A DNA stretch of 63,601 nucleotides from Heteronotia binoei. Taxonomy: Eukaryota. Where the stretch lies: NCBI RefSeq assembly GCF_032191835.1, contig NC_083223.1, forward strand, positions 806,001-869,601, read 5' to 3'. The translations under genes were made by a program, and so were the position numbers. The notes under the pieces are model-generated. The model saw only the letters and a list, made by a program, of their open reading frames with translations, made no database searches and had not been told where the DNA came from. This document shows, one piece after another, positions 6,486 to 63,441 of the stretch; position 1 is the first letter of the stretch; the number at the start of each line of letters is the position of its first letter.

Positions 6486-6537
6486 ATTTAGCAATGCAAT
6501 TGAACCAGGGGAAATTTGAATACAATGGCTCTTGCGG
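6486..6537 (+). CDS. PLCB4: PLCB4 exon: (D)LAMQLNQGKFEYNGSC(G)
   Basis: Acceptor gacag, donor gtgagt; phases match both neighbouring exons. Confidence 0.96.
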
Positions 6538-7232: not shown

Positions 7233-7235
7233 TAG

Positions 7236-7240
<5 letters not shown>

Positions 7241-7277
<37 letters not shown>
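7241..7277. repeat. (TA)n microsatellite
   Basis: Direct reading. Confidence 0.95.
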
Positions 7278-7281
<4 letters not shown>

Positions 7282-7369
7282 GAGGCAGAAGAAAGATAAC
7301 AGTGAATTATGCAAGAATTGGGGGTTCTGGTCTCTTTCAGACAGAATCTTTGAAGAAATGTATTTTTAA

Positions 7370-7925
7370 TAATAATAATAATACTTTTTATTTATATCCC
7401 GCCCTCCCTGCCGGAGCAGGCTCAGGGCGGCTCACAACATTTTAGTGCAATACAGTACAATACAATATAATACAATACATAAAATCACAATTCAATAATA
7501 CAATATAATACAATACAATAAAATCACAATTCAATAAATACTACATTATAAAACCATCATTTAAATCATTCCAATTAAAATTAACAGTTATGGTGCTAAA
7601 TTACAGGTTTTTAATAAATTGATGGCGGAATACAACAGCAGCGAATCTATCATTAGCTCAGCATTCAGCAAAGGCCATCTTAAAGAGAGTGGTCTTGCAG
7701 GCCCTGCGGAATTGGTCAAGACTCCGCTGGGCCCGCACTTCATCCGGAAGTTGTTTCCATAGGGGTAGAGCTGCGATAGAGAAGGGCCCGATCCCTTGCG
7801 TTCTTCAGTTTGGCCTCCCTCGGCCCAGGGATGTTCAGCTGGTTCTTTCCCGCTGACCTCAGTGCTCTCTGGGGTTCGTATGGGGAGAGACGGTCCCTCA
7901 GGTAGGCAGCCCTCGACCATATTTT
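7370..7925 (-). mobile_element. LINE 3' end, probably L2-type
   Basis: Reverse complement is nearly identical to 47686-48039, including tgtgagccgccctgagcc and a (TAT)n-type tail. Confidence 0.7.
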
Positions 7926-8480
7926 TATTAATCACAGTCTTTACTCTGCATAATATTTGTGACGTTTGGCATGCCGGAGTGGGGAAACTGAATCTCTACC
8001 CCCCCTCCCCCAAATTACATTTTTTATTTAAAAGGGAAATTGAACCCCGGAGTAGAAATTAGATCAAATTGCCCTCCTGCCCAAAGAAGATGCTCTCACA
8101 ATCCTTTTTCAGAAGCTGTTTGTGTGTCCATCTGCTTCGCTCATCAAGAGATTTTGCAACTTCTGTTGAAAGCAAGTCTCATTGGCAGAGGACTTTGGGC
8201 TAAACCGGTGTATGATTCACACTTGTTTTCTGTTGGCTCAGCTCCTGCAGTCTGCTGTTAGTTGAGAAATTCCTCTGGGATTCTCCCAACAAGAAGGTCA
8301 TGTCTGATTCAGTTCTACACAGTCAAAGTCAGTTAATCTAATCAGTTGACACTTGCTGCAAATTTGACACCTAGAGATCTCCGACTCTTAAGTTCTGTAG
8401 GGGAAACTTTGGGGAAAGAAAACCTGCCACTAATTTGTAATACCCTTGTCCTCTTGCCGTGTGTCAGGAAAGGGTGCCAG

Positions 8481-8665
8481 GCAGGGTTGCCTCTAAGCTG
8501 AGTGAGTGTGAGCTAGCTCACAGTGTTTTAGCATTTGGCTCACACATTTTTGTCTCAGCTCAGGAAATATGGCCCCAGAGCAAAATAAATTATTCAGTAG
8601 CTCCCAGCTTTAATGCCAGGAGTTCACAAAGTAGAATTTTTGCTCACAAGACTGCACAGCTTAGG
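8481..8665. mobile_element. hAT-type MITE family D, degenerate
   Basis: Homologous to 10628-10822. Confidence 0.7.
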
Positions 8666-8958
8666 TCGTGGTCCTGTTTGAGATTCCGAAGAGGGGAGAG
8701 GGGACAACAGAGTTTTCGTGCACAGCTTGGAGTAATCCCAATCAATACTCCCTCTAAGACTCACAGAGTCTCCTCCCCTGCCACAATCTTGGTTAGTCTT
8801 TGTGGGGCTCCTGGACTCTGGCTCTTTTCTGCTGCTACAGACAAACATGGCCACCCATCCAGATTTTCAGGGTATAAGCCTTCAGGAGAAAAAATTGCTT
8901 CCTTCGTTAGACCTAACATGTCTGCCATGCAGTTCATAACAACAGTTGATAATTCAGA

Positions 8959-9792
8959 TGAAGAAGATATTGGACTTATATCCCGCCCTATACTCTGAAT
9001 CTCAGTCTCAGAGCAGTCACAATCTCCTTTTACCTCCCCCCCCACACCACAACAAACACCCTGTAAGGTAGGTGGGGCTGAGAGAGCTTTCCCAGAAGCT
9101 GCCCTTTCAAGGACAACTCCTACAAGAGCTATGGCTAACCCAAGGCCATCCCAGCAGGTGCAAGTGGAGGAGTGGGGAATTAAACCTGGTTCTCCCAGAT
9201 AAGAGAGCTTTGGCTGACCCAAGGCCATTCCAGCAGGTGCAAGTGGAGGAGTGGGGAATTAAACCTGGTTCTCCCAGATAAGAGAGCTATGGCTGACCCA
9301 AGGCCATTCCAGCAGGTGCAAGTGGAGGAGTGGGGAATCAAACCCGGTTCTCCCAGATAAGAGAGCTCTGGCTGACCCAAGGCCATTCCAGCAGGTGCGA
9401 GTGGAGGAAGGGGGGAATCAAACCCGGTTCTCTCAGATAAGAGAGCTCTGGCTGACCCAAGGCCATTCCAGCAGCTGCAATTGGAGGAGTGGGGAATCAA
9501 ACCCGGTTCTCCCAGATAAGAGAGCTATGGCTGACCCAAGGCTATTCCAGCAGCTGCAGATGGAGGAGTGGGGAATCAAACCTGGTTCTCCCAGATAAGA
9601 GAGCTCTGGCTGACCCAAGGCCATTCCAGCAGCAGCAAGTGGAGGAGTGGGGAATCAAACCCGGTTCTCCCAGATAAGAGAGCTCTGGCTGACCCAAGGC
9701 CATTCCAGCAGCTGCAAGTGGAGGAGTGGGGAATCAAACTCAATTCTCCTAGGTTAGAGTCCGCACACTTCACCACTGCACCAAACTGGCTC
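8959..9792 (-). mobile_element. tRNA-headed CORE-type SINE (MIR/Ther1-derived, Squam3-like) with an internal 79-bp tandem array
   Basis: Head gagagccagtttggtgtagtgg, core cacctcacaggg and tail; 8 internal units at 9124-9756. Confidence 0.85.
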
Positions 9793-10269
9793 TGTGAATA
9801 TTTGGCATGACCCCTGGTACATGCAGTAAACACCAGCCATTTAGCCAACCCTGTAACTTGGCATTACATTTTTTAAAAATTCTCTCGGTGAATTCCCAAA
9901 TTCCTTTTAACTTGTGTGGTTTGAAAAACAAACGCACAACGGGAGAGGCCAACTGATTGCTGAAGGAGAACTTCAGAAAGACACACAGATGGGTTTCCTG
10001 GCTCTGTCATGCCCAGGGATGTTACGTACACGAGTAAGTGTCAGAAATGATTAGCAGAGAATGTCCGTAGCTTACACTGATTACTGTGCTTTTGTTTTCC
10101 ATGGTTCAGTGGTTAAAATTGCAGCAGTTCCGTACATATGTCTTGAAATGTACATTTCAGGAATGAATGCTTGGCTGCTACCGTACATTTTCAGTACGAA
10201 GCTTTGGTTGTTTAAAACATGTCTTCTATTTGTGCATTGGTGTGTGTGTGCTTTTGTTTTTGTTTTTGA

Positions 10270-12558: not shown

Positions 12559-12910
12559 TCATAGAATCATAGAGTTGGAAGGGACCTCTAGGGTCATCTA
12601 GTCCAACCCCCTGCGCAATGCAGGAAACTCACAAACCCCTCCCCCTAACTTCACAGGATCTTCACTGCTGTCAGATGTCCATCTAGCCTCTGTTTTAAAA
12701 CCTCCAAGGAAGGAGAGCCCACCACCTCCCAAGGGGGAAGCCTGTTCCACTGAGGAACCGCTCTAACGGTCAGGAAGTTCTGCCTAATATTGAGCCAGAA
12801 ACTCTTTTGATTTAATTTCCACCCACTGGTTCTGGCCCTACCTTCCAGGGCCACAGAAAACAATTCCACACCATCCTCTGTATGACAGCCCTTCAGGTAC
12901 TTGGTGATAG
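12559..12910 (-). mobile_element. CR1 LINE 3' fragment
   Basis: ORF2 C-terminus KYLKGCH...FSVALEGRARTSG...VVGSPSLEV and (catagaat)n tail. Confidence 0.9.
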
Positions 12911-23057: not shown

Positions 23058-23720
23058 TAAGAACCTAAGAGAAGCCATGTTGGATCAGGCCAGTGGTCCA
23101 TCCAGTCCAACACTCTGTGTCACACAGTGGCCAAAAAACACCAGGTGCCATCAGGAGGTCCACCAGTGGGGCCAGAACCGCAGAAGCCCTCCCACTGTTG
23201 CCCCTCCCAAGCACCAAGAAGACAGAGGATCCCTGCCCCAGACAGGGAGTTCCAACAATACGCTGTGGCTAATAGCCACTGATGGACCTCTGCTCCATAT
23301 GCTTATCCAATCCCCTCCTGAAGTCAGCTATGCTTGTAGCCGCCACCACCTCCTGTGGCAGTGAATTCCATGTGTTAATCACCCTTTGGGTGAAGAAGGA
23401 CTTCCTGTTATCCATTCTAACCTGACTGCTCAGCAATTTCATTGAGTGCCCAAGAGTTCTTGTAGTGTGAGAAAAGGAGAAAAGTACTTCTTTCTCTGCC
23501 TTCTCTATCCCAAGCATAATCTTGTAAACCTCTCTCATGTCCCCCCTCAGTTAACATTTCTCCAAGCTAAAGAGCCCCAAGCGTTTTAACCTTTCTTCAT
23601 AGGGTAATTGTTCCAACCCTTGAATTTTTCTAGTCGCCCTTTTCTGCACCTTTTCCAAAGCTATAATGTCTTTCTTGAGGTGTGGTAACCAGAATTGTAC
23701 ACAGTACTCCAAATGAGGCC
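23058..23720 (-). mobile_element. CR1 LINE 3' fragment
   Basis: ORF2 C-terminal peptides [25 protein letters not shown] and FFTQRVINTWNSLPQEVV plus 3' UTR. Confidence 0.92.
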
Positions 23721-32029: not shown

Positions 32030-32432
32030 TGAGCAGGACGGGACTGGCCTCCAGGCGCTTGGCTCAGCCTGTCTTGCAAAACTGAGTCTGCTTCCAACCC
32101 CAGACTGAGAAAGTGGTGGAGTAGAGCAAAGTGCTATAGAGCAGCGGGGTCAAACTTGCTTAAGAATAAAATAAATGTCAGATTTTTAGATGGATGGATG
32201 GACGAACAGACAGACGNNNNNNNNNNNNNNNNNNNNNNNNNNNNNNNNNNNNNNNNNNNNNNNNNNNNNNNNNNNNNNNNNNNNNNNNNNNNNNNNNNNN
32301 NNNNNNNNNNNNNNNNNNNNNNNNNNNNNNNNNNNNNNNNNNNNNNNNNNNNNNNNNNNNNNNNNNNNNNNNNNNNNNNNNNNNNNNNNNNNNNNNNNNN
32401 NNNNNNNNNNNNNNNNNNNNNNNNNNNNNNNN

Positions 32433-47383: not shown

Positions 47384-47490
47384 TCATAGAATCCTAGAGT
47401 TGGAAGGGACCTCTAGGGTCATCTAGTCCAACCCCCTGCACAATGCAGGAAACTCACAAACCCCTCCCCCTACATTCACAGCATCTTCTT
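47384..47490 (-). mobile_element. CR1 3' tail fragment
   Basis: catagaatcctagagttggaagggacctctagggtcatctagtccaacccc. Confidence 0.85.
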
Positions 47491-48040: not shown

Positions 48041-51000
48041 AGTGATTGTGCAGCCCAGCTCATCCAGAGGGGAGAAATATACTGAAATCTGTCAACAAAG
48101 AGCAGTAAGGTTGGATGTACGCACTTTTGTTTCAAAGGAGACCCTCCCCCCAGACATTGGACAATTTTTTAGTATTAATCAAAAGTATTACATTTTGATA
48201 GATTAGTGGTACCTTTAGAATTAACTGGAAATTTATAACTTCGGGGAAGTCAATATTGGAGGGAGGGGGGGGTGAAATATCATATGGTTTAGTATAAGAA
48301 AAGTTAATTAAATATTGTAACCATGTGTTATTAATAAATTGGTAAAACACAAAGGAGACCCTCCCCCCCCACCTCATAAAACCTTTCCTCCTTGAGGATT
48401 GAGGGGGGGGGGCTTTCCTGAGAATGTTGTCCTTCCCACCCTCCGCCCCCTCTGCTCGCCAGAAGAGCAATGGCCTAGAGATGCAAACACTTTCCCTCCT
48501 CTTCGTCTGAAATGTGTTCTGTCAGAAGGTCTCTTTGAGAGATCCAGACCTTGACAGAGGGTCCCCCAGATAGATCCAGACGGGTCGCCCTGTCCGCAGC
48601 CGTGCTGAAGCTGTGAGCCGCAACTCACAGAGACTCCTTCCCTGCCCCCCCCCCCCAGTTGGATCCATCTTGCGCTTTTCTGCCGCCCCCAGCCCGAATC
48701 GTTCCTTTCTGCAGCTGCTCGGGGAGAAAGTCACCGCTGGGAATCCGTGGGATCCCTCTGAAGATCCAGTGGAAGCTTTCAACAAATGCAATCAAAACGA
48801 AGAGATGTTGTAGCAAGAACAGTGATGAGCAGATCCCTCGTTCAAGTGAACCGAAACCGAAACCATGCATTCCCCCCAAATTGCATCTCCGCTTGATGCA
48901 GGTGAGGGAGAGCTCCAAAATGCGCGGAGGTGATCCTCTCTGTTTGATTCCCACCTGCCCCGCGAGAAGTCAAAGGGACCTGCGTCTCACTGCGTCAGCC
49001 CAAGGCCGCCGGAGAGATTCGACTGGAACCTGGGATTCGACAGTGGCCCCCTTCCTCCCCCCCACCCTTGTCTCTTGAAATCCTCACCGCATCCTTCACA
49101 CCGAGCCTGGCCTCTTGCCATTCCCTCAGACTAGTTTCCCATCCCAGATCTCTCTGACCCCAAACCCTAGCCACAAAAGAGCACAAAACCTGAGACTGAA
49201 ATGAATGTTCTTTGCCTTTAAGGTGCCACTCCTTTGACCCCCCCCTCCAATTTAGCACACTGCAGTCATTAGGGGGGGGGGATTTTGCTTGCAAAACACG
49301 CCTTTCATACTTTTCCGTGGGATCTTTTGTTTTGCATTCAAACGGCTTTTGGTTCACCTATCAGGTGAGAAGTTCCGTGTGTTTGGAGAGGCATACTCGC
49401 GGGGGGAAGCAAAACAGGCCTGCGTTTGGAAACGTGGGCTGCTTTCCCCGGTCGTCGGAAAGGTGCCTTTCGAGGCGGTTTCAGCGGGCCAGTTTTTCCT
49501 TTCAAATTTATATTTTCTTGACCGTGATTTAAACAAACAAAACAGGCGTTCGGTCAAGATCTCCGCGCTGCGCAGTCATTCAGGATTCATTTGCCTCCTT
49601 TGTTAGTTACTGTGGCGGCTAATTATAATCCAATGTATTTTGGGGGGCAGGAATCAATGAGTTGGAGGCTGCCCGCGCGCTTCTCTGCAGCCGCGGACTG
49701 CGGCACTTCCCCGTTGGCTTCTGGTGCAGAAAGAGGTCCGGGGCAGACGTTTCCTCTCCGGGGCCACCCGTTTGTTCGGCCCTCGCGCAAAGATTTTTAG
49801 TTCCACGACTGGGGGGGTCTGTGGGGGCTGGCAGTGCTGCGCAGAGGGATCCCCGAACGTCCCCCCCTTTTTTCAAAAGAGCGGCCGCCTCTGTATCAAC
49901 GCCGCCCCAATTCCAACCCGGGTTCCCCATCCGGATTTCACGGCCACGGAGTACAGTTTTTCCAACCAAGCTTTGAGGGCATCGTGTGGGCGAGAGGCTG
50001 CCATTGACAGAGACGACATTTTGCAGTGATCGACTTGGCGACGGTCACTGTTTTGCTCAAATCTACAGTGTCCCCCCCCCCCCTGCACCAAAACAGCGCG
50101 TCTGGCGCCGGAATGGCTGGGGGGTGGCTCGCTTGTGGACTGCGGGGTCCTCTCTCACGTCGCTCCGCAAGGCAGGGCCGCATGGGAAGCCAGAGCAATG
50201 CAGAGGGGTCGAGCGAAGACCCCCTTCGCCCTAAGCGAGCTGTAGGAATGCGGGTCCCCTTCGCGTTCTTGTCTGGCGGCCAGGGGGGCACCGAAGCGCG
50301 CAGCTTCTCTCCCCGCAGGATGTGGCTGAAGACCGGGGGAGGCGGGCGACATCCTCTTGGTGGGCCCAGCAGCTCCGCAGCAGCCGCCTTTCCCCAGCCG
50401 CTCGTTTGCCTGGCCTCCCAGTGCCTCCGGCCCGGGCCTTTGTCTCCAGGTTCCTGTGAGCCATCTGGGGGGGTGGGGGTGGGGGGGGGTGCTTCATTCC
50501 CTTCATTTGAAACTCCTTTTCTGCCCAGGCTACTTTCCTCGCGGAGGCTCGAGTCAAAGGATGCCAAAGGGCGCGCGGCGGGCGGCGGGCCCACGAAATG
50601 GCACCCTCTCCCCACGCCAAGGACCCGAGAAGCCAGCGCCGGTCCTGGCGGGCCTGCAGGTCGCGGGAAAGCGCGGCCTTTGTTTCACGGGGGCTCCCCC
50701 CAAATCCGGAATGCGGCTTCTCACACCCAAGCCTCAAATCCACGCCATTGACTGCGGACCCGGCCTCGTTTCCTCCTTGCAACCCAGCGCCTGAAAGACC
50801 GCAAGCGCGATTCTAGGCCGCAGAGAAGTGGAGATGCTCAGAACAGCTGGGAAGGGGTGTGTGTGTGTGTGTGCGTGTTGTGCGTGGGTGTGGATTCAAG
50901 TGTGTGCACTTAAGGGGGGGGGGTATCTACTGCGGGGGGAAGGGGGCTCAGACCCCTATTTGTTCCCGCCACCCGCGGGCTTCCCCCGGTTCCGCGCATC

Positions 51001-51724
51001 TTCGTCACGTGCCTTCGGGAATGGGTAGCAGAAGCTTGCTGTCCAGCCCCAAGAGCCAGGGGACGAGACGGGGGGGGGGTCAGGAGGGACACTGCAATGC
51101 TGCCCCCCCTGCCCCCGCCGCCGGCAGCCCAGCCTTTGCGAAGGGCGCGCCTTGGAGGAGCGCAGAGGGCCGCTTTCAGCCCCCCGCAGCCAGGAGCGGA
51201 TTGGGAAGGCTTTGGGGGGGGGGGGCGGGGGGGGTGGAGAAGCAGGAGCCCGGGGAAGAGCAGCCCTTCGCCTTCCTCCTCCTCCTCTTCCTCCTCCCGC
51301 CGAGAGGCGAGGCGAGGCGGGCTGCTGGATGGCGCGGAGGGGGCGGGCGGAGGTCGGAGGGGGAGGACGGCGCGGGAGCCGCCTCCGCCGGGCAGCTGCA
51401 GTCCCCCCTGGGCGAGCGGCGGTGCGGAGCTCCGACGGCTGCAGAGGCTGGACAGCTCCTGAGCGGCCCGGCTGGCTCCAGCGGCGTCAGTTCAGCGCCG
51501 GGACTCGGCGGACAGCTCCCTCCCCCGCCCCGCCCCGCCCCGCCCGGCTGCAGCGGGAGGGCAGAGCCGCGCGGGGACTTGGGGATCGGGCGCAGCGGCG
51601 GCGGCAGCGGCAGCAGCGCTCTGAGCGGCGCCGAGGGCAGCAAGACGGACGCGCGGCGGGGAGCAGCCTCCTCTCGGGGAACCTACTCGGCGGCGGCGGC
51701 GGAGGAGAAGGAGGCGAAGGAGGC

Positions 51725-51800
51725 ATGGGCCGGCTGCTGCTGCTGCCGCCGCCCCCGGGGCGCCGGGCCCGAGTCCCCGCAGGGCTGCTCCTTCTGCTCG
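51725..51800 (+). CDS. LAMP5: LAMP5 exon 1 coding part (signal peptide): [25 protein letters not shown](G)
   Basis: ATG in good context (ggcATGG), Leu-rich core, donor gtgagc, phase 1 matches exon 2. Confidence 0.8.
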
Positions 51801-52004
51801 GTGAGCGCTGCCTTCCCCGGACGGGGCTTTCTGCCCAGCCCCCCCTGCCCCTGTTTGGCGCAGCTGGGGAGCCGCTGGCTGCGAGGGCGGCGGGGGGGAG
51901 CGGACCGTGGAGAGGCTGGCCGGGGGGCCGGGCTGGGCGTCGGGGAAAGCCTTCCGCCCCCTGCCCAGCTCAGCCCAGCGGCGTGGTGCTTCTGCTCCCG
52001 GCAG

Positions 52005-52183
52005 GGGCGGCGCTGTCGGGGGGCGGCGCGGCGGCGCAAGAAGTGGAGAACCTGTCGGGCCTCTCGCCCAACCCGGAGAAGGTCATCTTCGCCGTGCGCC
52101 AGAACGAGACCACCTGCCTCATGGCCGAGTTCGCCGCCCGCTTCCTCGTCCCCTACGACGTCTGGGCCAGCAACTTCGTCGAC
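52005..52183 (+). CDS. LAMP5: LAMP5 exon 2: (G)[59 protein letters not shown]
   Basis: Close match to remembered LAMP5 [33 protein letters not shown]; acceptor ggcag, donor gtaagc. Confidence 0.96.
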
Positions 52184-53074
52184 GTAAGCGCCCCCCCTCC
52201 CCCGCCCCTCCGCTGCCTCCAACACCTGCCCCGCGCGGGGCTTTCTCCGGCGCCTCCACCGGCCCCTGGATCGCGCGCCCCCGACTCTGGGAAGGTCCAC
52301 AGAAGGCCCCAGGCCAGCGCAGCCTTCGCCGTCCCGTCGGCGCCCCGGGGCTCGCCTGCAAGATGCCCCCTCCGTCACCCCCTCCCATTCTCGGCTGCGG
52401 GTTGCCAGGCAATGCGTCGCCCCCCCCCCCCCGCACCGCCTCCCACCGGATCCGCACACCCGCAAGCACACCGAGGAAAAGGCTCCGCGCCCCCACCCGT
52501 CTTTGTGAGCCCCCCCGTCTGGTTTGCAAACCTCGGAGGCGGGCGGCTCCTGGGGGGGGGGGGTCGGGAGAGGCGAGTTTGCCCTTTCTCCTTCCGCCCC
52601 CCCCCCCCCGGTTGCAGAGCTTTGCTGGAGCGGCTCCCTTCCCCGAGGGGCTGCAAACTTCGCTTTTCCTTGGGAGGGGTTTTCCCCGTGGTCCCCCCCT
52701 CTCCGGCCTCCAAGCGTTTCTGTCCAGCGCCGGTCCCGGGCGGGTTGCGGGGAGGGGGAGGGCCGGGCTGGAGGACATCTGTAGGGCGGCTGTGGGGCTA
52801 AGCGGGGCGGGGGGGGCAACGCTCCCTCTAAGGCGTGGGGTCTTCTTGGGAGCAGGAAATCCCTCTCTTGCTGCTCGCTCCTGCAGCAGTTCCTTGGCCC
52901 CGGGGCCCGCCCTTCCTGAGCGAAGACCAAAGGTGGGTGCGGGAGGCTGAGGACCGGGGAGCGGGCTCACACGCCCTCCGCTGCTGCCCGGGGTGGCGGG
53001 GCGGGGGGACGGCCCTGGTGGGTCCTCCGAGGGAGACTGACGCCCCTTCCCGTCCCTCCCTCCCTGGCCGGCAG

Positions 53075-53206
53075 CTGATCACGGAGCAGGCGTCCATCCC
53101 GCTGTCCCGCGGCGCCGAGGAGCAGGGGCGGTGCGGCGCCAACGAGTCGGAGCTGCAGATCTCCTGGGCCCAGCGCGCCTTCTCCCTTCGCCTCTCCTTC
53201 GTCAAG
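53075..53206 (+). CDS. LAMP5: LAMP5 exon 3: [44 protein letters not shown]
   Basis: Matches LAMP5 LITEQADIALTRGAEVKGRCG; acceptor ggcag, donor gtaccc. Confidence 0.95.
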
Positions 53207-53458
53207 GTACCCCCCCGCCGCCCCCCGACGGGAGGGCGGGCGGGAGGAAGGCGGGAGGGCAGCGGGGGCCCCGGACGCCCACTGGGGGAGCCCTCCCAGG
53301 CCAGCAGGGGGAGGGGCAGCGGGGGCCCCGTCGAGGAAAACCAGGTCCCGCCGCCCCCTTCAAGCCCGGCCCCTGGGTAGGCAGAGAGAGGCCCCCACCC
53401 CCACCAGGCCGGTCTGGCTGACTGATCCCCTTTCTCCCCCACCCCACCCGATGGCCAG

Positions 53459-53564
53459 GAGGGGCGCAACAGCAGCCGGGGGGCGGAGGCCTGGTGGAAG
53501 ATGAACCGAGTCCAGTTCATCTACGACAGCTCCGAGCGCACCTACTTCAAGGACCCCGTCAACC
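53459..53564 (+). CDS. LAMP5: LAMP5 exon 4: EGRNSSRGAEAWWKMNRVQFIYDSSERTYFKDPVN
   Basis: Matches LAMP5 VQFVYDSSEKTHFKDAVS; acceptor gccag, donor gtgagt. Confidence 0.95.
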
Positions 53565-53661
53565 GTGAGTGGTTCTTCTCCCACCCCCGAAGGGGCCTGA
53601 GAGGGGGGCGGGGGAGGTAGGAAAAGGAGAGAGGCTGCGGCCCAGCGGGAAATGGATATGG

Positions 53662-53930
53662 GGACATCAGGAGACCAGAGCCCAGCTGGGTCAGAGCAGG
53701 GAGGGTCCATCTAGTCCAGCCTCCCGTCTCACACAGGGGCCAACCAGTCCCTCTGGAGGGACAACAGGGCAGAGAGGCCGAGGCCTTCCCCAGCTGTTGC
53801 TTTCTGGCTCTGGGATTCAGAGGATTCGTGACTCAAAATGTGGAAGTTTCCCTCAGTCACAGTGGCTAGTAGTCACTCACAGACTTCCTCTCCATCAGTA
53901 TATCCAATCCCGCTTTAAAACTGGATGATG
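53662..53930 (-). mobile_element. CR1 3' end running into a gap
   Basis: Same unit type as 18671-19223. Confidence 0.8.
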
Positions 53931-54950
53931 NNNNNNNNNNNNNNNNNNNNNNNNNNNNNNNNNNNNNNNNNNNNNNNNNNNNNNNNNNNNNNNNNNNNNN
54001 NNNNNNNNNNNNNNNNNNNNNNNNNNNNNNNNNNNNNNNNNNNNNNNNNNNNNNNNNNNNNNNNNNNNNNNNNNNNNNNNNNNNNNNNNNNNNNNNNNNN
54101 NNNNTGACAGGCAGGAATAGCTCTCCTGTTTCCTGGAATATTTTGAAAGGGAAAGTGGGCACGATCCTTGTCATGCTTTTCCCTTCTCTTCCTTCTTTGG
54201 ACAGCTTCACACTGCATGTCTCTGTTGCCATAGTGCCTTCAGGATCTTCAGGGAAATATTTCCCTCCCCCCTCCCCTTTCATTTCCTCTCCCCCTTTCCT
54301 TGTTTCTTTCCAGCCCTGAAACCCACGAAACCCGCCTTCCCTTTCACACCCACGCTGGCTTCCCTCTGCACCTGAGTCCCGCCCCAGAGAGGCTGAGGGA
54401 GGCCTGCTGCTTGGTGGTTTCTCTTCTGAGAAGAGGGTGGGGAGAAAGTGCTCTTCCTATTCAAGGGCAGGCAGAAGTGCTGGGGTGAAAGGCCTCATGT
54501 CCATAGGACGGTCTGAAAGACATCCATTTCATCTGTGTGGACAGTTCCATAGGATTTGGTGTCATGTACAGTAATGGCACAGCCATGTCTTTTCCCAAAG
54601 GTGTTTCTTTGTGGTGAGAAAGGCTGGGGATGGGAAGAAGTTCCTTTCATAGGAAAGTCTCTTAATGGGACGTAGCAGCAAAGTTGGGTGTTTAGAAGCC
54701 ATTTATTCCAGTTGCTTTTCTGTCTGTTGGGGATCTTGCAGCTAGACTGCGTTGCTTCTAAGATTTCTGGGTACCTTCAGTCACATGAACAGCCCTGCAG
54801 ATTTCCGTGGTGCATTGTCTGACTTACAATTCTGCACACGTACAGATATTTCGGAGTGTTGTGTTTCATGCCGTATGCCTTCATCCTCCCCACCCCACCC
54901 CACCCCCCAAGTCCACATTTGCTGCTTTGAGCAATACCACCCCCCCCAGG

Positions 54951-55617: not shown

Positions 55618-56087
55618 AGAGAGAAGGAACGGTGTGTTCCACCATGAGGTCTGTGGAGTCAGGCTCCAAAGGATTGTGTGGATTAATGTAGGGGAGAGGG
55701 AACAGAGCCCACAGGTCCCCACCAATCACTCAGCACCTACAGCAATTATTGCCATAGAAATGCCAGATACGCTGCACTGCCAGAGCCAGATTAACAATTA
55801 GGCCAAGTAGGCACTGATCTATGGGCTCCCACGCCTTTANNNNNNNNNNNNNNNNNNNNNNNNNNNNNNNNNNNNNNNNNNNNNNNNNNNNNNNNNNNNN
55901 NNNNNNNNNNNNNNNNNNNNNNNNNNNNNNNNNNNNNNNNNNNNNNNNNNNNNNNNNNNNNNNNNNNNNNNNNNNNNNNNNNNNNNNNNNNNNNNNNNNN
56001 NNNNNNNNNNNNNNNNNNNNNNNNNNNNNNNNNNNNNNNNNNNNNNNNNNNNNNNNNNNNNNNNNNNNNNNNNNNNNNNNNNNNNNN

Positions 56088-56205: not shown

Positions 56206-57267
56206 TAATGAAGAAAAGAAGGCCATGAATGCCAAACTTATTTGACAAGAAATTACTCAAATCAGCAAACAGCCCCCCAAAGGAGATTATAGAACACCCT
56301 CCCCAGAGAGCTGCCCTCTACAAGGGACAGCAGAAGACCAGTTTATTTTGGACTGCATTTGACTGATTTGGTGTCTTTTATTGGCAACCCTTACTGGAGT
56401 TCTAAATGTGTAACCTTTTGTGTGCCTCTAATTGTTGCTTTATCATTTAACAATTTTAAATGGTTTTATTTCTACTGTAAGCTNNNNNNNNNNNNNNNNN
56501 NNNNNNNNNNNNNNNNNNNNNNNNNNNNNNNNNNNNNNNNNNNNNNNNNNNNNNNNNNNNNNNNNNNNNNNNNNNNNNNNNNNNNNNNNNNNNNNNNNNN
56601 NNNNNNNNNNNNNGACAATCATTGTCTCTTTTTCTGGTTAACTCCCTGGGAGAGGCCAAGAGACTTGTCCCTTCCCTCCTGCACCTTTGGGAAGAGTCAG
56701 GAAGGCCTGCTAATGCCTCTGAGGCTAGAGTGGGATTCGTCTCTGGCATCCTGTAATTTTGTTGTGCTGATGCCCTCCTTACCTAAAGTCCTTAGCCCGG
56801 GGTGAGACAGACACTTTTGACATGACCCCTGCCTAACCAAAGAAACAAGAAGTTGGTTAAATGTCGTCGACCTGCCCAAACCACTTCTTTATTCAAATAT
56901 TTATACCCCACTTTTACTGTGACCCAAGGCAGCTTACAAATCATACTGATAATAGTAGGTGTGCAAAAAAAAAAAAAGATTTTTCCTGCTCCATTATAGC
57001 CTATGTGGAGCATTATAGTCCATGGGCCCCACAGGCTATGATGGAAACTCAATCTGGGAGCATTTGGGGGTCTGGGGGGACTGTTTATTAACTTTGCAGC
57101 ATGGTTGCTGGTGCTTCTCCTAAAAAAGCAAACAACCCCCCCCCCCAAGTTTCAAAAATGGTTGGGCCAGGGGTTCAAAATCTGTGGACCCCCAAAGAAG
57201 GTGCCCCCAGACTCCATTGCTTCCAAAGGAGAGAGAAAGAGCTTGTGAGCTGGAAGCTAAAATCTCT

Positions 57268-58148
57268 GGAAAAGGGAAGGTCCCCTGTGCAAGCACCAGT
57301 CATTTCCGACTCTGGGGTGACGCTGCTTTCACAACGTTTTCACGGCAGACTTTTGATGGGGTGGTTTGCCATTGCCTTCCCCAGTCATAAGAACATAAGA
57401 GAAGCCATGTTGGATAAGGCCAATGGCCCATCCAGTTCAACACTCTGTGTCACACAGTGGCCAAAAAATTTATATACACACTGTGGCTAATAGCCACTGA
57501 TGGACCTCTGCTCCATATTTTTATCTAACCCCCTCTTGAAGCTGGCTATGCTTGTAGCCGCCACCACCTCCTGTGGCAGTGAATTCCACATGTTAATCAC
57601 CCTTTGGGTGAAGAAGTACTTCCTTCTATTCGTTTAAACCTGACTGCTCAGCAATTTCATTGAATGCCCATGAGTTGTGAGAAAGGGAGAAAAGGACTTC
57701 TTTCTCTACCTTCTCCATCCCATGCAGAATCTTGTAAACCTCTATCATGTCACCCCGCAGTCGACGTTTCTCCAAGCTAAAGAGCCCCAAGCGTTTTAAC
57801 CTTTCTTCATAGGGAAAGTGTTCCAACCCTTTAATCATTCTAGTTGCCCTTTTCTGCACTTTTTCCAATGCTATAATATCCTTTTTGAGGTGCAGTGACC
57901 AGAATTGCACACAGTATTCCAAATGAGACCTCACCATCGATTTATACAGGGGCATTATGATACTGGCTGATTTGTTTTCAATTCATCTACACTTTCCCCC
58001 CAGCAAGCTGGGGATTCCTTTTACCGACCTCGGAAGGATGGAAGACTGAGTCAACCTCGAGCCGGCTACCTGAAAACGCAGCTTCCATCGGGGATCGAAT
58101 TCAGGTCGTGAGCAGAGCTTAGGACTGCAGGACTGCAGCTTTAACACT
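57268..58148 (-). mobile_element. Sauria-type SINE interrupted by a CR1 3' fragment (about 57389-57982)
   Basis: SINE sequence ccccagtcat|ctacactttcc is split; the insert encodes [19 protein letters not shown]...[16 protein letters not shown]. Confidence 0.87.
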
Positions 58149-58220
58149 TTGTTTGTCAGGACCCTAGCACAATTTGAGGGGACACAATTCCTCAGCCTCC
58201 TCCTCAGTTGATGCTGGACT

Positions 58221-58226
58221 TTTATT
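58221..58226 (-). terminator. AATAAA downstream of the repeat ORF
   Basis: tttatt on the + strand at 58221-58226; TTGTG elements follow on the minus strand. Confidence 0.5.
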
Positions 58227-58300: not shown

Positions 58301-61300
58301 TTAGGGCCTCTTGCTGAGCTCTTCCATTTTCTTTCTTCTGGCTGCCTCCAGCTCCTGCAGGGCTTCCCTCTGGGCCAGCTGGAGTTCTTCTTGGGCTCTC
58401 TCTGCCTCCTCCCTCTTTTCCATTGCGATCTTCTCCGCTCTTTCCTGCTCCTCTAACACTTTTCTTTGAAGTTGTGAAAGTTCTTTCACGGCAGTCTCAG
58501 CTCTTTCTCTTGCTTTCATTGCTTTGTTAGCCTTTTCCTGTTCTTCTAGGCACTTTTCCTGATCCTTTAAAAGTTCTTCCTGGGCCTTTTGAGCTTTCTC
58601 TTTTGCCACTCTCTTCTCAGCCCTTTCCTGTTCTTCCAGGACATTCCTATGGCTTATTGAAAGTTCTTCCGGGGCCACCTCAACTATATGCCTTTCTTTT
58701 AGTGCTGTCTCAGCCCTTTCTTGTTCTTCAAAGGCTGTTCTCCGAATCGTTATAAGTCCTTCCTGAGCTTTTGGAGCTCCCCCTCTTTCTTTCAGCGCTT
58801 TCAGCTCAAGCTTTTCTTGTTCTTCTAAGACCTTCCTTTCAGTTTTTGCAAGTTCTTCCAGTGCTGCCACAATCATCCTTCTTTCATGCACTGCTTTCTT
58901 CTCAGCCCTTTCCTGTTCTTCTAGGACCACCCTATGAATCTTTGAAAACTCTCCCAGGGCTGACTCAGCCATTTCTGGTTCTTGCATGGCTCTCTGGGCC
59001 TTCTCCTGTTCTTCAAGGACCTTTATCTGGATTTCTGAAAGTTCTTTCTTGGCTTTTTGAGCTCTCTGGACTTCACACATTGCTTTCTTAAAAGCCTCTT
59101 CTTGTTCATCTAGAATCCTTCTCTGAATCTTTGCAACTTCTTCCAGGCCTGCTTCAGCCATCTTTTGTTCCTCCTTTGCTTTCCGCTCAGCTTTTTCTTG
59201 TTCTTCCAGGACTTTCCCCTGACTCTTCGAAAGTTCTCTCAGGGCTGCCTCAACTACATGTTTTTCTTGTAGTGCTTTCTTAGCCAATTCTTGTTCTTCA
59301 AGGACTCTTCTGTGAATCTTTATAAGCTCTTCCTGGGCTTTTTGAGTTCTCTCTCTTTCTTTCAGTGCTCTCAGCTTGAGCTTTTCTTGTTCTTCTAAGA
59401 CCTTCCTATGAGCCCTTGAAAGCTCTTCCAGGGCTGCTTCAGTTGTCCTTCTTTCTTGCATGGCTTTCTTCTCAGCCCTTTCCTGTTCTTCAAGGACCTT
59501 TCTCTGAATTTCTAAGAGTTCTTCCTTGGCTTTTTGAGCTCTCTGGATTTCACACATTGCTTTCTTTTCTGCTTCTTCTTGTTCATGTAGGACCTTTCTC
59601 TGAATCTTCAAAAGTTCTTCCAGGTCTGCTTCAGCCATCTTTCGTTCCTCCTTTGCTTTCCTCTCAGCCTTTTCCTGTTCCTCAAGGACCTTCTGATGCT
59701 TCCTTGAAAGTTCTTCCATTGCTACCTTGGTTTCTTCTCGTTCTTGCAGGGCTTTCTTCTTAGCCCTTTCGTGTTCTTCTAAAACCATCCTATGAATCTT
59801 TGAAAGTTCTTGGAGGGCCAACTCAACCATTTCTCGTTCCTGCATGACTTTTTTTGCCTTTTCCTGTTCTTCAAAGACCTGTATTTGGATTTCTGAGAGT
59901 TCTTCCTTGGCTTTTTGAGCTCTCTGGATCTCATGCATTACTTTCTTTTCAGCTTCTTTGTGTTCATCCAGGATCTGTCTTTGGATCTTTACAAGTTCTT
60001 CCAGGTCTGCTTCAGCTAACTTTCTTTCCTCCTTCACTTTCATCTCAGCTTTCTCCTGTTCCTCAAGGACCTTCCTATGAGTCTTCGAAAGCTCTTCCAG
60101 GGCTGCCTCAGCTTCTGCTCGTTCTTGGGACGCCTTCTTGGCCTTTTCCTGTTCTTCAAGGACCTGTATCTGGATTTCTGAGAGTTCTTCCTTGGCTTTT
60201 TGAGCTCTCTGTATTTCACACATTGCTTTCTTTTCAGCTTCTTCTTGTTCATGTAGAACCTTCCTCTGAGTCTTTAAAAGTTCTTCTAGTTCTGCTTCAG
60301 CCATCTTTCTTTCCTCCTTTGCTTTCCTCTCAGCTTCTTCCTGTTCTTCTAGGATCTTCTGATGAGTCTTTGAAAGTTCTTCCAGGGCTGCCTTGGCCAC
60401 TTCTCTTTCTTGCATGGCTTTCTTGGCCTTTTCCTGTTCTTCAAGGACCTTTCTCTGGATTTTTAAGAGTTCTTCCTTGGCTTTCTGAGTTCTCTGGATT
60501 TCACACATTGCTTTCTTTTCAGCTTCTTTGTGTTCATCCAACATCTGTCTTTGAATCTTTGCAAATTCTTCTAGTTCTGCTTCAGCCATCTTTCTTTCCT
60601 CCTTCGCTTTCCTCTCAGCCCTTTCCTGTTCCTCTAGGACTTTCCTATGAGTCTTTGAAAGTTCTTCCAGGGCTGCCTCTAATTCTTGCTTGGTTTTCTT
60701 CTTAGCCCTTTCGTGTTCTTCTAAGACTACCCTATGAATCTTTGAAAGCTCTTCTAGGGTTGCTTCGGCCATTTCTCGTTCTTGGATTGCTTTCTTGGCC
60801 TTCTCCTGTTCTTCGAGGACCTTTACCTGGATTTCTGAGAGTTCTTCCTTGGCTTTTTGAGCTCTCTGGATCTCATGAGTTGCTTTCTTTTCAGCTTCTT
60901 TGTGTTTGTCCAGGATCTGTCTTTGAATCTTTGCAAGTTCTTCTAGGTCTGCTTCAACCATCTTTCTTTCCTCCATTGCTTTTCTCTCAGCCCTTTCCTG
61001 TTCCTCAAGGACCTTCCTATGAGTCTTTAAAAGTTCTTCCTCAAGGACCTTTCTCTGGATTTCTGAAAATTCTAAGAGCTTTCTCTGAATTTTTGCAAGT
61101 TCTTCCAGGTCTGCTTTAGCCATCTTTATTTCCTCCATAACTTTCCTCTCAGCGCTTTCTGGATCCTCTAGGACCTTCCTATGAATCTTTGAAAGTTCTT
61201 GCAGGGCCAACTCAGCCATTTCTCGATCTTTCATTGCTTCTTGGACCTTTTCCTGCTCTTCAAAGACCTTTATCTGGATTTCTGAGAGTTTTTCCTTGGC

Positions 61301-62356
61301 TTTTTGAGCTATCTCTATTTCACACATTGATTTATTTTCAGCTTTTTCTTGTTCATGTAGGATCTTCCTCTGAATCTTTAAAAGTTCTTCCAGGTCTGCT
61401 TCAGCCATCTTTCTTTCCTCCTTTGCTTTCCTCTCAGCCCTTTCCAGTTCCTCTAGGACCTTCCGGTGAGTCCTTGAAAGTTCTTCCAATGCCGTCTCGG
61501 CTTCTTCTCGTTCTTGCATGGCTTTCTTCTTAGCCCTTTCCTGTTCTTCTAGGAGTACACTATGAATCTTTGAAAGTTCTTCTAGGGCCAACTCAGCAAT
61601 TTCTTGTTCTTGCGTTGCTTCCTTGGCCTGTTTTTGTTCTTCAATGACCTTTGTCTGGATTTCTGAGAGTTCTTCCTTAGCTTTTTGAGCTCTCCCTCTT
61701 TCATTCAGCTCTTTCAGCTCAAAGTTTTCTTGTTCTTCTAAGACCTTCCTATGAGCCCTTGAAAGGTCTTCCAGGGCTGCCTCAGCCGTCCTTCTTTCTT
61801 GCATGGCTTTCTTCTCAGCCCTTTCCTGTTCTTCTACGACTATCCTATGAATCTTTGATAGCTCCCCCAGGGCTGCCTCAGCCACTTCTCTTTCTTGCCT
61901 GGCTTTCTTGGCCTTCTCTTGTTTTTCAAGAACCTTCATCTGGATTTCTGAGAGTTCTTCCCTACTTTTTTGAGCTCTCTGCATTTCATATGTTGCTTTC
62001 TTTTCAGCTTCCTCTTGTTCATCTAAGATCCTCCTCTGAATCTTTGCAACTTCTTGCAGGTCTGCTTCAGCCATCTTTTGTTCCTCCTCCATTTTCCTTT
62101 CATCCCTTTTCTGTTCCTCAAGGACCTTCCTATGCGTCTTTGAAAGTTCTTTCAGGGCTGCCTCGGCCATTTCTTGTTCTTGCGTGCCTCTCTTGGCCTT
62201 CTCCTGTTCAAGGACTTTTATCTGGATTTCTGAGAGTTTTTTCTTGGCTTTTTGAGCTCTCTGAACTTCACACATTGCTTTCTTAAAAGCCTCTTCTTGT
62301 TCATCCAGGATCCTTCTCTGAATCTTCAAAAGTTCTTCCAGGTCTGCTTCAGCCAT
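58301..62356 (-). CDS. Uncharacterised 1351-aa E/K/A/Q/R-rich tandem-repeat helical/coiled-coil protein, antisense to LAMP5
   Basis: 4056-nt ORF without a stop; ATG in strong context (aagATGG); 31-32-aa monomers; AATAAA 75 nt after TAA. No expression data and no family recognised. Confidence 0.7.
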   Translation of the reverse strand: MAEADLEELLKIQRRILDEQEEAFKKAMCEVQRAQKAKKKLSEIQIKVLEQEKAKRGTQEQEMAEAALKELSKTHRKVLEEQKRDERKMEEEQKMAEADLQEVAKIQRRILDEQEEAEKKATYEMQRAQKSREELSEIQMKVLEKQEKAKKARQEREVAEAALGELSKIHRIVVEEQERAEKKAMQERRTAEAALEDLSRAHRKVLEEQENFELKELNERGRAQKAKEELSEIQTKVIEEQKQAKEATQEQEIAELALEELSKIHSVLLEEQERAKKKAMQEREEAETALEELSRTHRKVLEELERAERKAKEERKMAEADLEELLKIQRKILHEQEKAENKSMCEIEIAQKAKEKLSEIQIKVFEEQEKVQEAMKDREMAELALQELSKIHRKVLEDPESAERKVMEEIKMAKADLEELAKIQRKLLEFSEIQRKVLEEELLKTHRKVLEEQERAERKAMEERKMVEADLEELAKIQRQILDKHKEAEKKATHEIQRAQKAKEELSEIQVKVLEEQEKAKKAIQEREMAEATLEELSKIHRVVLEEHERAKKKTKQELEAALEELSKTHRKVLEEQERAERKAKEERKMAEAELEEFAKIQRQMLDEHKEAEKKAMCEIQRTQKAKEELLKIQRKVLEEQEKAKKAMQEREVAKAALEELSKTHQKILEEQEEAERKAKEERKMAEAELEELLKTQRKVLHEQEEAEKKAMCEIQRAQKAKEELSEIQIQVLEEQEKAKKASQERAEAEAALEELSKTHRKVLEEQEKAEMKVKEERKLAEADLEELVKIQRQILDEHKEAEKKVMHEIQRAQKAKEELSEIQIQVFEEQEKAKKVMQEREMVELALQELSKIHRMVLEEHERAKKKALQEREETKVAMEELSRKHQKVLEEQEKAERKAKEERKMAEADLEELLKIQRKVLHEQEEAEKKAMCEIQRAQKAKEELLEIQRKVLEEQERAEKKAMQERRTTEAALEELSRAHRKVLEEQEKLKLRALKERERTQKAQEELIKIHRRVLEEQELAKKALQEKHVVEAALRELSKSQGKVLEEQEKAERKAKEEQKMAEAGLEEVAKIQRRILDEQEEAFKKAMCEVQRAQKAKKELSEIQIKVLEEQEKAQRAMQEPEMAESALGEFSKIHRVVLEEQERAEKKAVHERRMIVAALEELAKTERKVLEEQEKLELKALKERGGAPKAQEGLITIRRTAFEEQERAETALKERHIVEVAPEELSISHRNVLEEQERAEKRVAKEKAQKAQEELLKDQEKCLEEQEKANKAMKARERAETAVKELSQLQRKVLEEQERAEKIAMEKREEAERAQEELQLAQREALQELEAARRKKMEELSKRP

Positions 62357-62708
62357 CTTTTGTTCCTCCTTTGCTTTCCTCTCAGCACTTTCCTGTTCTT
62401 CCAGGACTTCCCTATGAGTCTTTGAAAGTTCTTTCTACCCTGGGGCTATATCCTTGTGTTGCTACATCTACTTTATGTACTATCCTATTGGCTTTCCTAT
62501 GAATCTGTGAAAGCTCTCCTAGGGCTCCCTGATAGAGAGATTATCAAAAACAAAGGGTAATTTTGTGATGTCATCAGTGACATCATTGCCAGGGTGGGGG
62601 ACAGGGTGAGTAGGTTAAAGGTCACCCACCCAACATATAATCCCAGGGGCTATCAGAGAGTTTGACTGCAGTACTGCAGCTTTACCACTCTGCACCACGG
62701 GACTCTTA

Positions 62709-63441
62709 GCCCTTCTCCAATCCTCTGGCATATCACCTGTGCACCAAGAGGCCTTGAAGATACTGGATAACAGCTCTGCCAATTCTCCAGATATTTGTTT
62801 AAGCACTCTTGGGCGTTTTCTGTGGCCCCAGAAGGTAGGACCAGAACGAATGGGTTGAAATTAAATCAGAAGAGTTTTCAACTTAATAGTAGGAAGAACT
62901 TCCTGACCATTAGAGCCGTTCCTCAGTGGAACAGTCTTCCTCCTTGGGAGGTGGTGGGCTCTCCTTCCTTGGAGGTTTTTAAACAGAGGCTAGATGGCCA
63001 TCTGACAGCAATGTGGATCCTGTGAATTTAGTGGGAGGTATTTGTGAGTTTAGAGCGGTTCCTCAGTGGAACAGTCTTCCTCCTTGGGAGGTGGTGGGCT
63101 CTCCTTCCTTGGAGGTTTTGAAACAGAGGCTAGATGGCCATCTGACAGCAGTGCTAATTCTGCAAATTAAGCAGATCATGATGAGAGGGAGGAGAAGAAA
63201 GGCTTCATCGGGGCTTAGTTCTTGTGGCCTTTTCTTACACACCCAGATAAATGCTGTTCAAGCAGCGATTCTTCTCCAGGCCAATTTGGCCAGGAATCCT
63301 GGAGGTTTTTTGCCATCTCCTTGGTGTGGGGCAGGGGTCCCTTGGTGTGTGCGTGTGTGTGTGGAAGGTGTTTGTGAATTTCCTGCATTGTTCAGGGGAC
63401 TAGACGACCCAAGAGATCCCTTCCAACTCTAGGATTCTATG
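62709..63441. mobile_element. Composite CR1 remnants: inverted RT fragment (62709-62809), then sense 3' end with a duplicated unit and tail
   Basis: Minus-strand ELAELLSSIFKASWCTGDMPEDWRRA; plus-strand FSVAPEGRTRTNGLKL...VVGSPSLEVFKQRLDGHL, repeated at about 63051-63150. Confidence 0.8.

Follow-up and report, generated by a model that had tools for sequence, protein, structure and literature searches.

The window analyzed here, a stretch of 63,601 nt from Heteronotia binoei (GCA_032191835.1), contains a tandem repeat array that is open in one reading frame over 4 kb. This raises the question of whether the frame is kept open by selection on a protein or only by the way in which the repeats exchange with one another. 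We conclude, with a probability of about 0.7, that this gecko intronless ORF is held open by purifying selection and that its product is most likely a continuous alpha-helical rod ~200 nm in length.

An Intronless Reading Frame Antisense Within LAMP5

The ORF and its surroundings comprise the following features:

52037..53565, plus strand: LAMP5 exons 1-3 with canonical splice sites (exon 1 ending at 52183, exon 2 at 53075-53206, exon 3 ending at ~53565)
58221..58226, minus strand: AATAAA, a candidate polyadenylation signal read from the sequence, 75 nt 3′ of the stop codon
58301..62356, minus strand: uninterrupted intronless ORF of 1351 codons followed by a TAA stop

The start ATG of the ORF has an A at −3 and a G at +4, and no promoter was identified for it. 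A called gene in the assembly has a product exactly equal to that of the ORF; it may be an ab initio model. Since LAMP5 exon 4 lies beyond the window, at a window-equivalent position of ~68.6 kb, the ORF is antisense within LAMP5 intron 3. An arrangement placing LAMP5 exons 4-6 inside three runs of N (53.9-56.6 kb), with the ORF downstream of LAMP5, was ruled out by this position of exon 4 and by the LAMP gene model of the assembly, which extends across the ORF.

Three Tiers of Repetition

A monomer profile covers ORF residues 1-1347 without gaps by 42 monomers, mostly of 32 or 31 aa, and five monomer types can be told apart (A, B, C, C′ and D). In the identity matrix, monomers of the same type are 81-85% identical at the nucleotide level, compared with 60-72% for different types and 64% for adjacent monomers, making the array a true higher-order repeat. 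The monomer phylogeny suggested by the preliminary description resolves the same five groups, the monomers clustering by their position in the unit rather than by adjacency. Tandem Repeats Finder (TRF) periods are 96, 285 and 381 nt. The lowest tier, which the preliminary description had missed, is a 10/11-residue sub-motif, A-x-x-x-hydrophobic-L-E-E-x-x-x; three such sub-motifs make up a 32-residue monomer (31 in type B), and monomers A, B and C form a 95-residue higher-order unit, while the extra types C′ and D occur in longer units of 127, 159 and 222 residues. In the identity autocorrelation, lags of 10/11, 21, 31/32 and 95 stand out as peaks, and those of 7, 14 and 28 do not rise above background.

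The units of the array are:

62075..62356, minus strand: unit 1, A B C, 94 aa, with a B monomer one codon short
61409..62074, minus strand: unit 2, A B C′ D B C′ C, 222 aa
61124..61408, minus strand: unit 3, A B C, 95 aa
60962..61123, minus strand: unit 4, 54 aa, an A-B-C unit shortened by two internal deletions (66 and 57 nt)
60590..60961, minus strand: unit 5, A B C′ C, 124 aa, with three codons gone at the C′/C junction
60020..60589, minus strand: units 6 and 7, both canonical A B C, 95 aa each
59639..60019, minus strand: unit 8, A B C′ C, 127 aa
59162..59638, minus strand: unit 9, A, B/C′ chimera, D, B-variant, C, 159 aa
59447-59542, minus strand: chimeric monomer 30 of unit 9
58688..59161, minus strand: unit 10, A B C′ D B-variant
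58316..58687, minus strand: four diverged tail monomers of 31, 30, 32 and 31 aa

The ten MAEA-type starts from which a repeat grammar had originally been proposed lie, as described, at 62356, 62074, 61408, 61123, 60961, 60589, 60304, 60019, 59638 and 59161, the first residue at 60019 being L, not M. Their spacings of 94, 222, 95, 54, 124, 95, 95, 127 and 159 aa are confirmed, as is their reading as sums of monomers (95 = 32+31+32; 127 = 95+32; 159 = 32+32+32+31+32; 222 = 32+31+32+32+31+32+32). The three exceptions, 94, 54 and 124 aa, are indeed whole-codon deletions, all of 3n nt: 3 nt in monomer 2 of the 94-aa unit, 66 plus 57 nt, and 9 nt, respectively. A Cys said to recur in about six units is found at monomer position 29 in six of the nine full A-type monomers (residues 29, 345, 618, 713, 935 and 1094), and a seventh Cys of the ORF sits in the tail. 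The recurrence of the N-terminal block 3195 nt away, described as almost verbatim, is so for the protein (29 identical residues running) but less so for the DNA: the first two monomers of unit 10 have those of unit 1 as their closest relatives, with 92% nucleotide identity for monomers 1/34 and 2/35, and the match falls to 83% over 356 nt. Whole units are not near-identical, as ongoing homogenisation would make them, since identity reaches 83-87% in the best off-diagonal segments and 92% in the closest monomer pairs. Gap counts from the blastn self-alignment were discarded because of compensating 1-nt gap artefacts.

Exchange Between Units Explains the Changes in Length

Monomer 30 belongs to type B over its 5′ half and to type C′ over its 3′ half, of which 46 nt are identical to monomer 6, and the crossover falls within the shared VLEEQE core. 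Such a clean B/C′ chimera shows in-register exchange directly. In the 54-aa unit, each of the two deletions fuses the L-E-E codons of adjacent sub-motifs. The exchanging units are in the same codon phase, which keeps the large length variants and these microhomology deletions in frame for mechanical reasons. Homologous exchange among units of common codon phase has thus reshaped the array, producing gains, losses and chimeras that stay in frame by mechanism, and selection is needed only to account for why stops and 1-2 nt indels are missing.

Purifying Selection on the Frame

The ORF frame contains no internal stop, whereas the two alternative sense frames contain 65 and 102. In a neutral simulation using the observed substitution spectrum over 3048 nt, 14.3 ± 3.6 stops were expected and none of 2000 runs was stop-free; synonymous changes numbered 95, against 67 ± 7 expected. 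The codon third position is the most variable. dN/dS between monomers, for which a value near 1, together with frameshifted alleles in reads, had been put forward as grounds for rejecting the proposal, is ~0.34 in frame, compared with 0.59 and 1.13 in the shifted-frame controls; it is 0.30-0.39 within types A, B, C and C′ and higher in the D (0.77) and B-variant (0.56) monomers. All these comparisons are between paralogous repeats of a single allele, because no orthologue or close homologue was found among 1.84 billion representative proteins. Pooling positions 6, 9, 16 and 17 of the monomer, we counted 11 non-synonymous changes (17.75 expected) and 21 synonymous ones (9.1 expected), and the Leu positions 6 and 17 alone account for 18 synonymous and 2 non-synonymous changes.

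The same repeat continues for a short distance beyond the start codon:

62357..62526, minus strand: repeat remnant outside the ORF, made of a C-monomer piece and a decayed C′ monomer

In this remnant, the 3′ 80 nt of a C monomer are still in frame, behind a TAG, and the decayed C′ monomer ahead of this piece carries stops and non-3n indels, which are seen only outside the ORF. Repeat similarity starts immediately after a pyrimidine-rich stretch ending in CAG. Taken together, these results show that purifying selection has purged stops and frameshifts and has kept the Leu/Val/Ile seam (positions 6, 9, 16 and 17) and the Glu at positions 8, 19 and 30. The earlier proposal of unequal exchange combined with selection on the frame is therefore supported by the chimera, the lack of stops and the frame-specific dN/dS.

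A Predicted Helical Rod

The hydrophobic residues repeat with a period of 3.53 residues, with harmonics at 5.3 and 10.5. The claim that the 31/32 period is non-heptad, for which hydrophobicity analysis had been proposed as a check, thus holds for the sequence period, which has no 7-residue component, but only by half for the structure, the hydrophobic period being close to the heptad value of 3.50. The seam consists of L6, L9 and V/I16, plus I12 and L17, the remaining positions being Ala, Gln/His or Glu, and LIVMF make up 22% of residues. AlphaFold2 modeling of 285 residues gave helices at 2-160 and 164-284, with a mean pLDDT of 83; such models are unable to tell whether the helix is single or part of a dimeric coiled coil. 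Folding of each 95-residue unit into a spectrin-like three-helix bundle was ruled out, as Gly and Pro are almost absent and the modeled helices cross the unit borders. Pairs of opposite charge are enriched at i+4 (0.189) and i+7 (0.20) relative to the 0.115 expected, and not at i+5 (0.10), a pattern more in keeping with intrahelical salt bridges than with a classic parallel dimer. The predicted product would be a charged helical rod, dimer or single helix, with a weak hydrophobic stripe and one Cys per A monomer, and would act as a structural or spacer element.

Relatives in a Sauropsid TPR Plus Coiled-Coil Family

The sole sequence relatives of the ORF are sauropsid proteins that combine Hip/ST13-type TPR domains with a coiled-coil tail (phmmer E = 2e-23 and 7e-18), the best homologue, from Anolis, being 33-39% identical. 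Searches of Pfam and of PDB sequences with the ORF gave no match. ESM Atlas contains the ORF sequence letter for letter, and provided no usable neighbour for it. The relatives are uncharacterised (Anolis A0A803T9I5 and A0A803TUC8, Pogona A0ABM5GQ97, and bird entries automatically named “golgin subfamily A member 6-like”), and we found no paper on this family or on the locus. Their TPR matches the Hip structure 4J8D (E = 1e-67), and the gecko-monomer profile matches the tails of eight of them with a spacing of 32 and sub-spacings of 11/21/22. Like the ORF, these proteins have an E/K/Q-rich tail of 32-residue monomers with an ALEEQE-type core, and one Anolis and one Pogona monomer beginning MAEAAL closely resemble the gecko C type. 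Moreover, the gecko tail monomers and the final monomers of the Anolis and Pogona relatives are collinear. The family genes are single-exon, as is the ORF, the bird gene spans being exactly three times the protein length plus stop.

The family has TPR domains and a C-terminal tail, and the gecko ORF has neither: tblastn with six family proteins detected no TPR, either in the window or across the 10 kb upstream, the ORF terminates four residues past its last monomer, and the squamate C-terminal motif ending FFQTEYIPEF, present in two of the relatives, had no match downstream of the ORF at E < 10. When the Anolis C-terminal region was used as query, matches were confined to the Anolis cluster. 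Whereas the ORF has 42 monomers organized in three-monomer units, the relatives have roughly 8-12 loosely repeated ones, and the bird genes, unlike the ORF within LAMP5, are not inside another annotated gene. A tblastx comparison of the window with the bird loci recovered shared CR1-like retroelement pieces only, which says nothing on synteny.

Comparison With Known Repeat and Helix Systems

In the higher-order repeats of alpha satellite DNA, monomer types are set by position in a larger unit, monomers of the same type are more alike than neighbours, and in-register unequal exchange gives rise to variant units and chimeric monomers. The gecko array resembles alpha satellite in its position-defined types, in-register exchange and chimeric monomers, but it is coding and under purifying selection, its units are only 81-85% alike, where actively homogenised satellite arrays reach 95-100%, and there are ten of them rather than thousands. 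Among proteins, nebulin has 35-residue modules arranged in seven-module super-repeats, and the Olduvai triplets of NBPF are likewise grouped. As in these, short modules in the ORF make up a longer coding unit, and it is this longer unit that duplicates; the ORF has no sequence relation to them, and it is a single uninterrupted exon predicted to form one continuous helix.

With coiled coils containing regular heptad breaks, with 11-residue helical repeats such as those of apolipoproteins and perilipins, and with ER/K helices, the ORF shares an E/K/R/Q/A-rich helix, the 10/11-residue sub-motif and i+4 opposite charges. Its 32-residue monomer equals four heptads plus four residues, or three heptads plus one hendecad. 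It departs from these systems in that its hydrophobic period is 3.53, not 3.67, and that there is no proline punctuation; its content of large hydrophobics, with their conserved seam, may be too much for a typical single alpha-helix. The ORF is a tidy, lineage-specific instance of an already known kind and does not amount to a new principle.

Discussion

The most serious challenge to a protein that is still made is that the ORF was long under selection and is now a silent relic, or has no reality beyond an ab initio gene model, being a decaying partial copy of the tail of a TPR plus coiled-coil gene, not yet hit by a disabling mutation. Such a reading would accommodate the 5′-truncated array with its decayed monomer at the edge, the lack of the family's TPR domains and C-terminal tail, and the lack of any annotated close homologue. 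Yet nucleotide differences between repeat copies amount to 8-20%, most ORF codons are one step from a stop, and 4 kb have remained free of stops and frameshifts where ~14 stops are expected neutrally. Any loss of constraint would thus need to be very recent, and we regard this reading as improbable.

We give much less credence to a non-coding, satellite-like array whose open frame would be a by-product of composition and of the exchange of 93/96-nt units. The sense strand is indeed 70% purine and T-poor, and unit lengths in multiples of 3 would let exchange alone keep the phase, but the other two sense frames share this composition and are full of stops; the stop-free outcome absent from the simulations, the synonymous excess, the frame-specific dN/dS and the restriction of non-3n indels to the DNA outside the ORF likewise disfavour it. 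Selection on the RNA or DNA, for example on an antisense transcript that controls LAMP5 or on the LAMP5 pre-mRNA with its 4-kb pyrimidine tract, would suit the antisense location in intron 3 and the strong strand asymmetry of the stretch; however, constraint tracks codon phase, with a variable third position, synonymous Leu changes and stops avoided in one frame only, which makes such selection just as hard to credit. Finally, tandem arrays are error-prone in assemblies, and collapsed or mis-joined repeats could create a higher-order pattern. Here, the frame is intact over every junction, there is no N within 57-63.6 kb, and the copies are just 81-92% identical, so that reads place uniquely, leaving an assembly artefact the most remote of these explanations.

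We thus retain a protein-coding frame under purifying selection. Its array would descend from the coiled-coil tail of the sauropsid intronless Hip/ST13-type TPR family, which has an equal 32-residue period. A truncated copy was probably inserted antisense in LAMP5 intron 3 and expanded afterwards, an origin suggested by the collinear tail monomers and by the lack of TPR within 10 kb upstream. A parent gene was not located in the H. binoei genome. More tentatively, and with somewhat less than even confidence in the whole sequence of events, we propose a gene that arose in the gecko lineage from a fragment: a doubly truncated tail copy, antisense in LAMP5 intron 3, would have gained a start codon inside the repeat, undergone a several-fold, three-tier, in-phase expansion, and come to be translated into a 200-nm rod with periodic cysteines.

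If this is true, the fragment-born gene would be a coding array of satellite-style higher-order structure kept by selection. The stretch offers a compact case in which mechanism can be separated from selection in a coding tandem array, the same repeat just beyond the ORF showing the outcome without selection. It also reveals an uncharacterised sauropsid intronless family, derived from Hip/ST13 and bearing a 32-residue helical tail, together with a TPR-less derivative of this TPR plus coiled-coil family nested in a conserved neuronal gene, LAMP5. If expressed, the ORF would provide a defined system for the evolution of repeat number and hierarchy under helical constraint.

An intronless repeat ORF lies antisense within LAMP5

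The reading frame comprises 1351 codons, and a gene with exactly its product is called in GCA_032191835.1 (CM063325.1, 854301-878356; exact product look-up), the accession that a published study gives for the Heteronotia binoei reference genome. LAMP5 occupies the plus strand of the window, where exons 1-3 are readable.

Features of the locus
58301-62356, minus strand: intronless ORF
52037-52183, plus strand: LAMP5 exon 1, canonical splice sites
53075-53206, plus strand: LAMP5 exon 2, canonical splice sites
about 53495-53565, plus strand: LAMP5 exon 3, canonical splice sites

Given that exon 3 precedes the ORF, that exon 4 was found in the fetched locus at a window-equivalent position of ~68.6 kb, past the window end, and that the assembly's LAMP gene model extends across the ORF, the ORF is antisense in LAMP5 intron 3. 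The window holds six N runs (356-613, 695-1181, 32217-32432, 53931-54104, 55840-56087 and 56484-56613); that exon 4 is hidden in the three within intron 3 was ruled out by its location beyond the window. The product of the LAMP model has 487 residues, far above the expectation for LAMP5, so that its N-terminus is probably over-extended in a GC-rich open frame. A CpG-island-like block (50000-54000, ~70% G+C) contains the 5′ end and exons 1-3 of LAMP5, and inside intron 3 the plus strand, sense for LAMP5 pre-mRNA, forms a 4-kb pyrimidine-rich tract (58301-62526; AT skew about -0.5, GC skew about -0.26).

The ATG of the ORF has A at -3 and G at +4, and the TAA stop is followed 75 nt downstream by AATAAA, a candidate poly(A) signal immediately preceding a SINE and a CR1-like fragment. 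The tRNA-like head of this SINE spans 58060-58200, right behind the candidate signal, and upstream of the ORF a SINE-like piece of ~110 nt occurs in two direct copies (62910-63162). A CR1-like LINE is represented by copies of its 3′ portion, where the reverse-transcriptase ORF ends, at 57523-58060, ~12570-12900, 23305-23720 and 47395-47450; these copies also match the flanks of the fetched bird loci L001 and L002.

The array is a higher-order repeat built from short sub-motifs

The preliminary description is confirmed: all ten MAEA-type starts, with the nine spacings between them, match it exactly, and TRF gave tandem periods of 96, 285 and 381 nt. A monomer profile tiled residues 1-1347 without gaps, setting 42 monomers, each 32 or 31 residues long, that belong to five types.

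Monomer types and their order in the ORF
Type A: starts MAEADLEEL, bears the KAMCE cysteine
Type B: 31 residues, starts RAQKAKEEL
Types C and C′: MAEAALEEL-like, second halves differing
Type D: fifth type
Units 1 and 3: A B C
Unit 2: A B C′ D B C′ C
Unit 4: 54-residue fragment
Units 5 and 8: A B C′ C
Units 6 and 7: A B C each
Unit 9: A, B/C′ chimera, D, B-variant, C
Unit 10: A B C′ D B-variant
ORF end, after unit 10: four diverged tail monomers

Monomers of one type have a nucleotide identity of 0.81-0.85, those of different types 0.60-0.72 and neighbours 0.64, and type, not adjacency, groups the monomers in a maximum-likelihood tree; by this defining property the array is a higher-order repeat.

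Residue identity along the ORF protein by lag (autocorrelation; background ~0.10)
7 residues: 0.093
10 residues: 0.154
11 residues: 0.192
14 residues: 0.111
21 residues: 0.213
28 residues: 0.109
31 residues: 0.215
32 residues: 0.329
95 residues: 0.407

These lags, together with a hydrophobicity spectrum whose main peak at 3.53 residues is accompanied by harmonics at 5.3 and about 10.5, show that each monomer is composed of three sub-motifs, which are 10 or 11 residues long and have L-E-E as their core. The result is a hierarchy of sub-motif, monomer, 95-residue unit and longer variants. The 31/32-residue period had been described as non-heptad, which holds for the sequence, since lags 7, 14 and 28 are at background, but not for the hydrophobic stripe, whose 3.53 residues come near the 3.5 of a heptad, as they would if four heptads were followed by a stutter of four residues; 32 residues over nine turns correspond to 3.56, and the array average of 31.7 to 3.52.

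The frame is kept both by the mechanism of exchange and by selection

The proposed unequal exchange left a direct trace, in register, by exchange or conversion: monomer 30 (59447-59542), the B/C′ chimera, follows B over its first ~45 nt, while its last 46 nt are identical to C′ monomer 6, the switch falling inside the common VLEEQE core. The identical 46-nt 3′ ends are at 59447-59496 and 61790-61839, and monomers of one type usually differ by 11-18%; the identity is the trace of a fairly recent conversion or exchange across 2.3 kb. The exceptional spacings are whole-codon deletions, as had been proposed. The 54-residue unit is an A-B-C unit lacking 66 and 57 nt, both deletions fusing the L-E-E codons of a sub-motif with those of the next monomer, and the remaining exceptions are one 3-nt and one 9-nt deletion. 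Because the exchanging units have a common codon phase, these events are in frame by mechanism, and much of the frame preservation that the preliminary description credited to selection is thus mechanical. With this refinement, and the one on the hydrophobic period, the preliminary inference of unequal exchange filtered by selection is supported.

Selection is nevertheless supported by stop codons, substitutions and decay outside the ORF. The ORF frame has no internal stop, against 65 and 102 in the other sense frames. When each typed monomer was mutated neutrally away from its type consensus, by changes that matched the observed ones in number and spectrum (2000 runs), 14.3 ± 3.6 stops arose in 3048 nt and no run was stop-free (0/2000); the simulation is conservative because its spectrum derives from surviving sequence, and shared ancestry of changes reduces the expected stops, yet not to near zero. 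Synonymous codon changes numbered 95, against 67 ± 7 simulated. Within types A, B, C and C′, dN/dS by the Nei-Gojobori method lies at 0.30-0.39, and the value pooled over all typed monomers is 0.34 in frame rather than near 1, compared with 0.59 and 1.13 at a one- or two-base shift. Changes in the hydrophobic seam are mostly silent: of those at Leu positions 6 and 17, 18 are synonymous and 2 non-synonymous. Directly 5′ of the ATG, a C monomer remains in frame for 80 nt behind a TAG, preceded by a decayed C′ monomer that can be aligned only with gaps of 1, 6, 2, 2, 5 and 3 nt and has stops in all frames; the same repeat decays outside the ORF.

The product is predicted to be a long helical rod

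The predicted 1351-residue protein contains 24% Glu, 14.5% Lys, 12% Ala, 10% Leu, 9% Gln and 8% Arg, with 5 Pro and 9 Gly. For residues 590-874, AlphaFold2 without an alignment predicted helices 2-160 and 164-284 (mean pLDDT 83) that continue across monomer and unit borders, the lone low-confidence break and fold-back being untrustworthy. Enrichment of opposite charges is seen at i+4 and i+7, not at i+5. A helical rod of ~200 nm is a well-supported prediction; the rod may be either a dimeric coiled coil or, for the most part, a single helix.

The ORF resembles the tail of a Hip-like sauropsid family

Relatives were sought among 5.8 billion proteins by a word-indexed search and among 1.84 billion representatives by an exhaustive HMMER scan. 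The two gave only a handful of matches, the significant ones being one protein from Anolis, a fragment from Pogona and several proteins from birds. These relatives have two or three TPR modules (recognised by Pfam) followed by an E/K/Q-rich tail, and the Anolis TPR region tested matches the structure of Hsc70-interacting protein Hip (ST13), 4J8D, at E = 1e-67. In two birds the gene length is exactly the coding length, and the genes are therefore intronless (L001, 10001-13321; L002, 10001-13033), which suggests that the family started as an ST13/Hip retrocopy and then gained its repeat tail. Our literature search found no paper on this family.

The gecko monomer profile matches the relatives' tails every 32 residues, with sub-spacings of 11, 21 and 22, and by this match the 32-residue monomer predates the gecko array. 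The gecko ORF is similar to the tail only: no TPR coding was found in the window or in the 10 kb upstream, read as positions 1-10000 of the fetched locus L003, nor was the relatives' squamate C-terminal motif found with it. The final monomers of the gecko ORF are collinear with those of the relatives. As the origin of the ORF we infer a truncated copy of the tail of a TPR and coiled-coil gene, which later expanded. The gecko array brings no new principle and is a clean worked example; the ORF is probably a TPR-less derivative, specific to its lineage, of a sauropsid Hip-like family that is itself uncharacterised.
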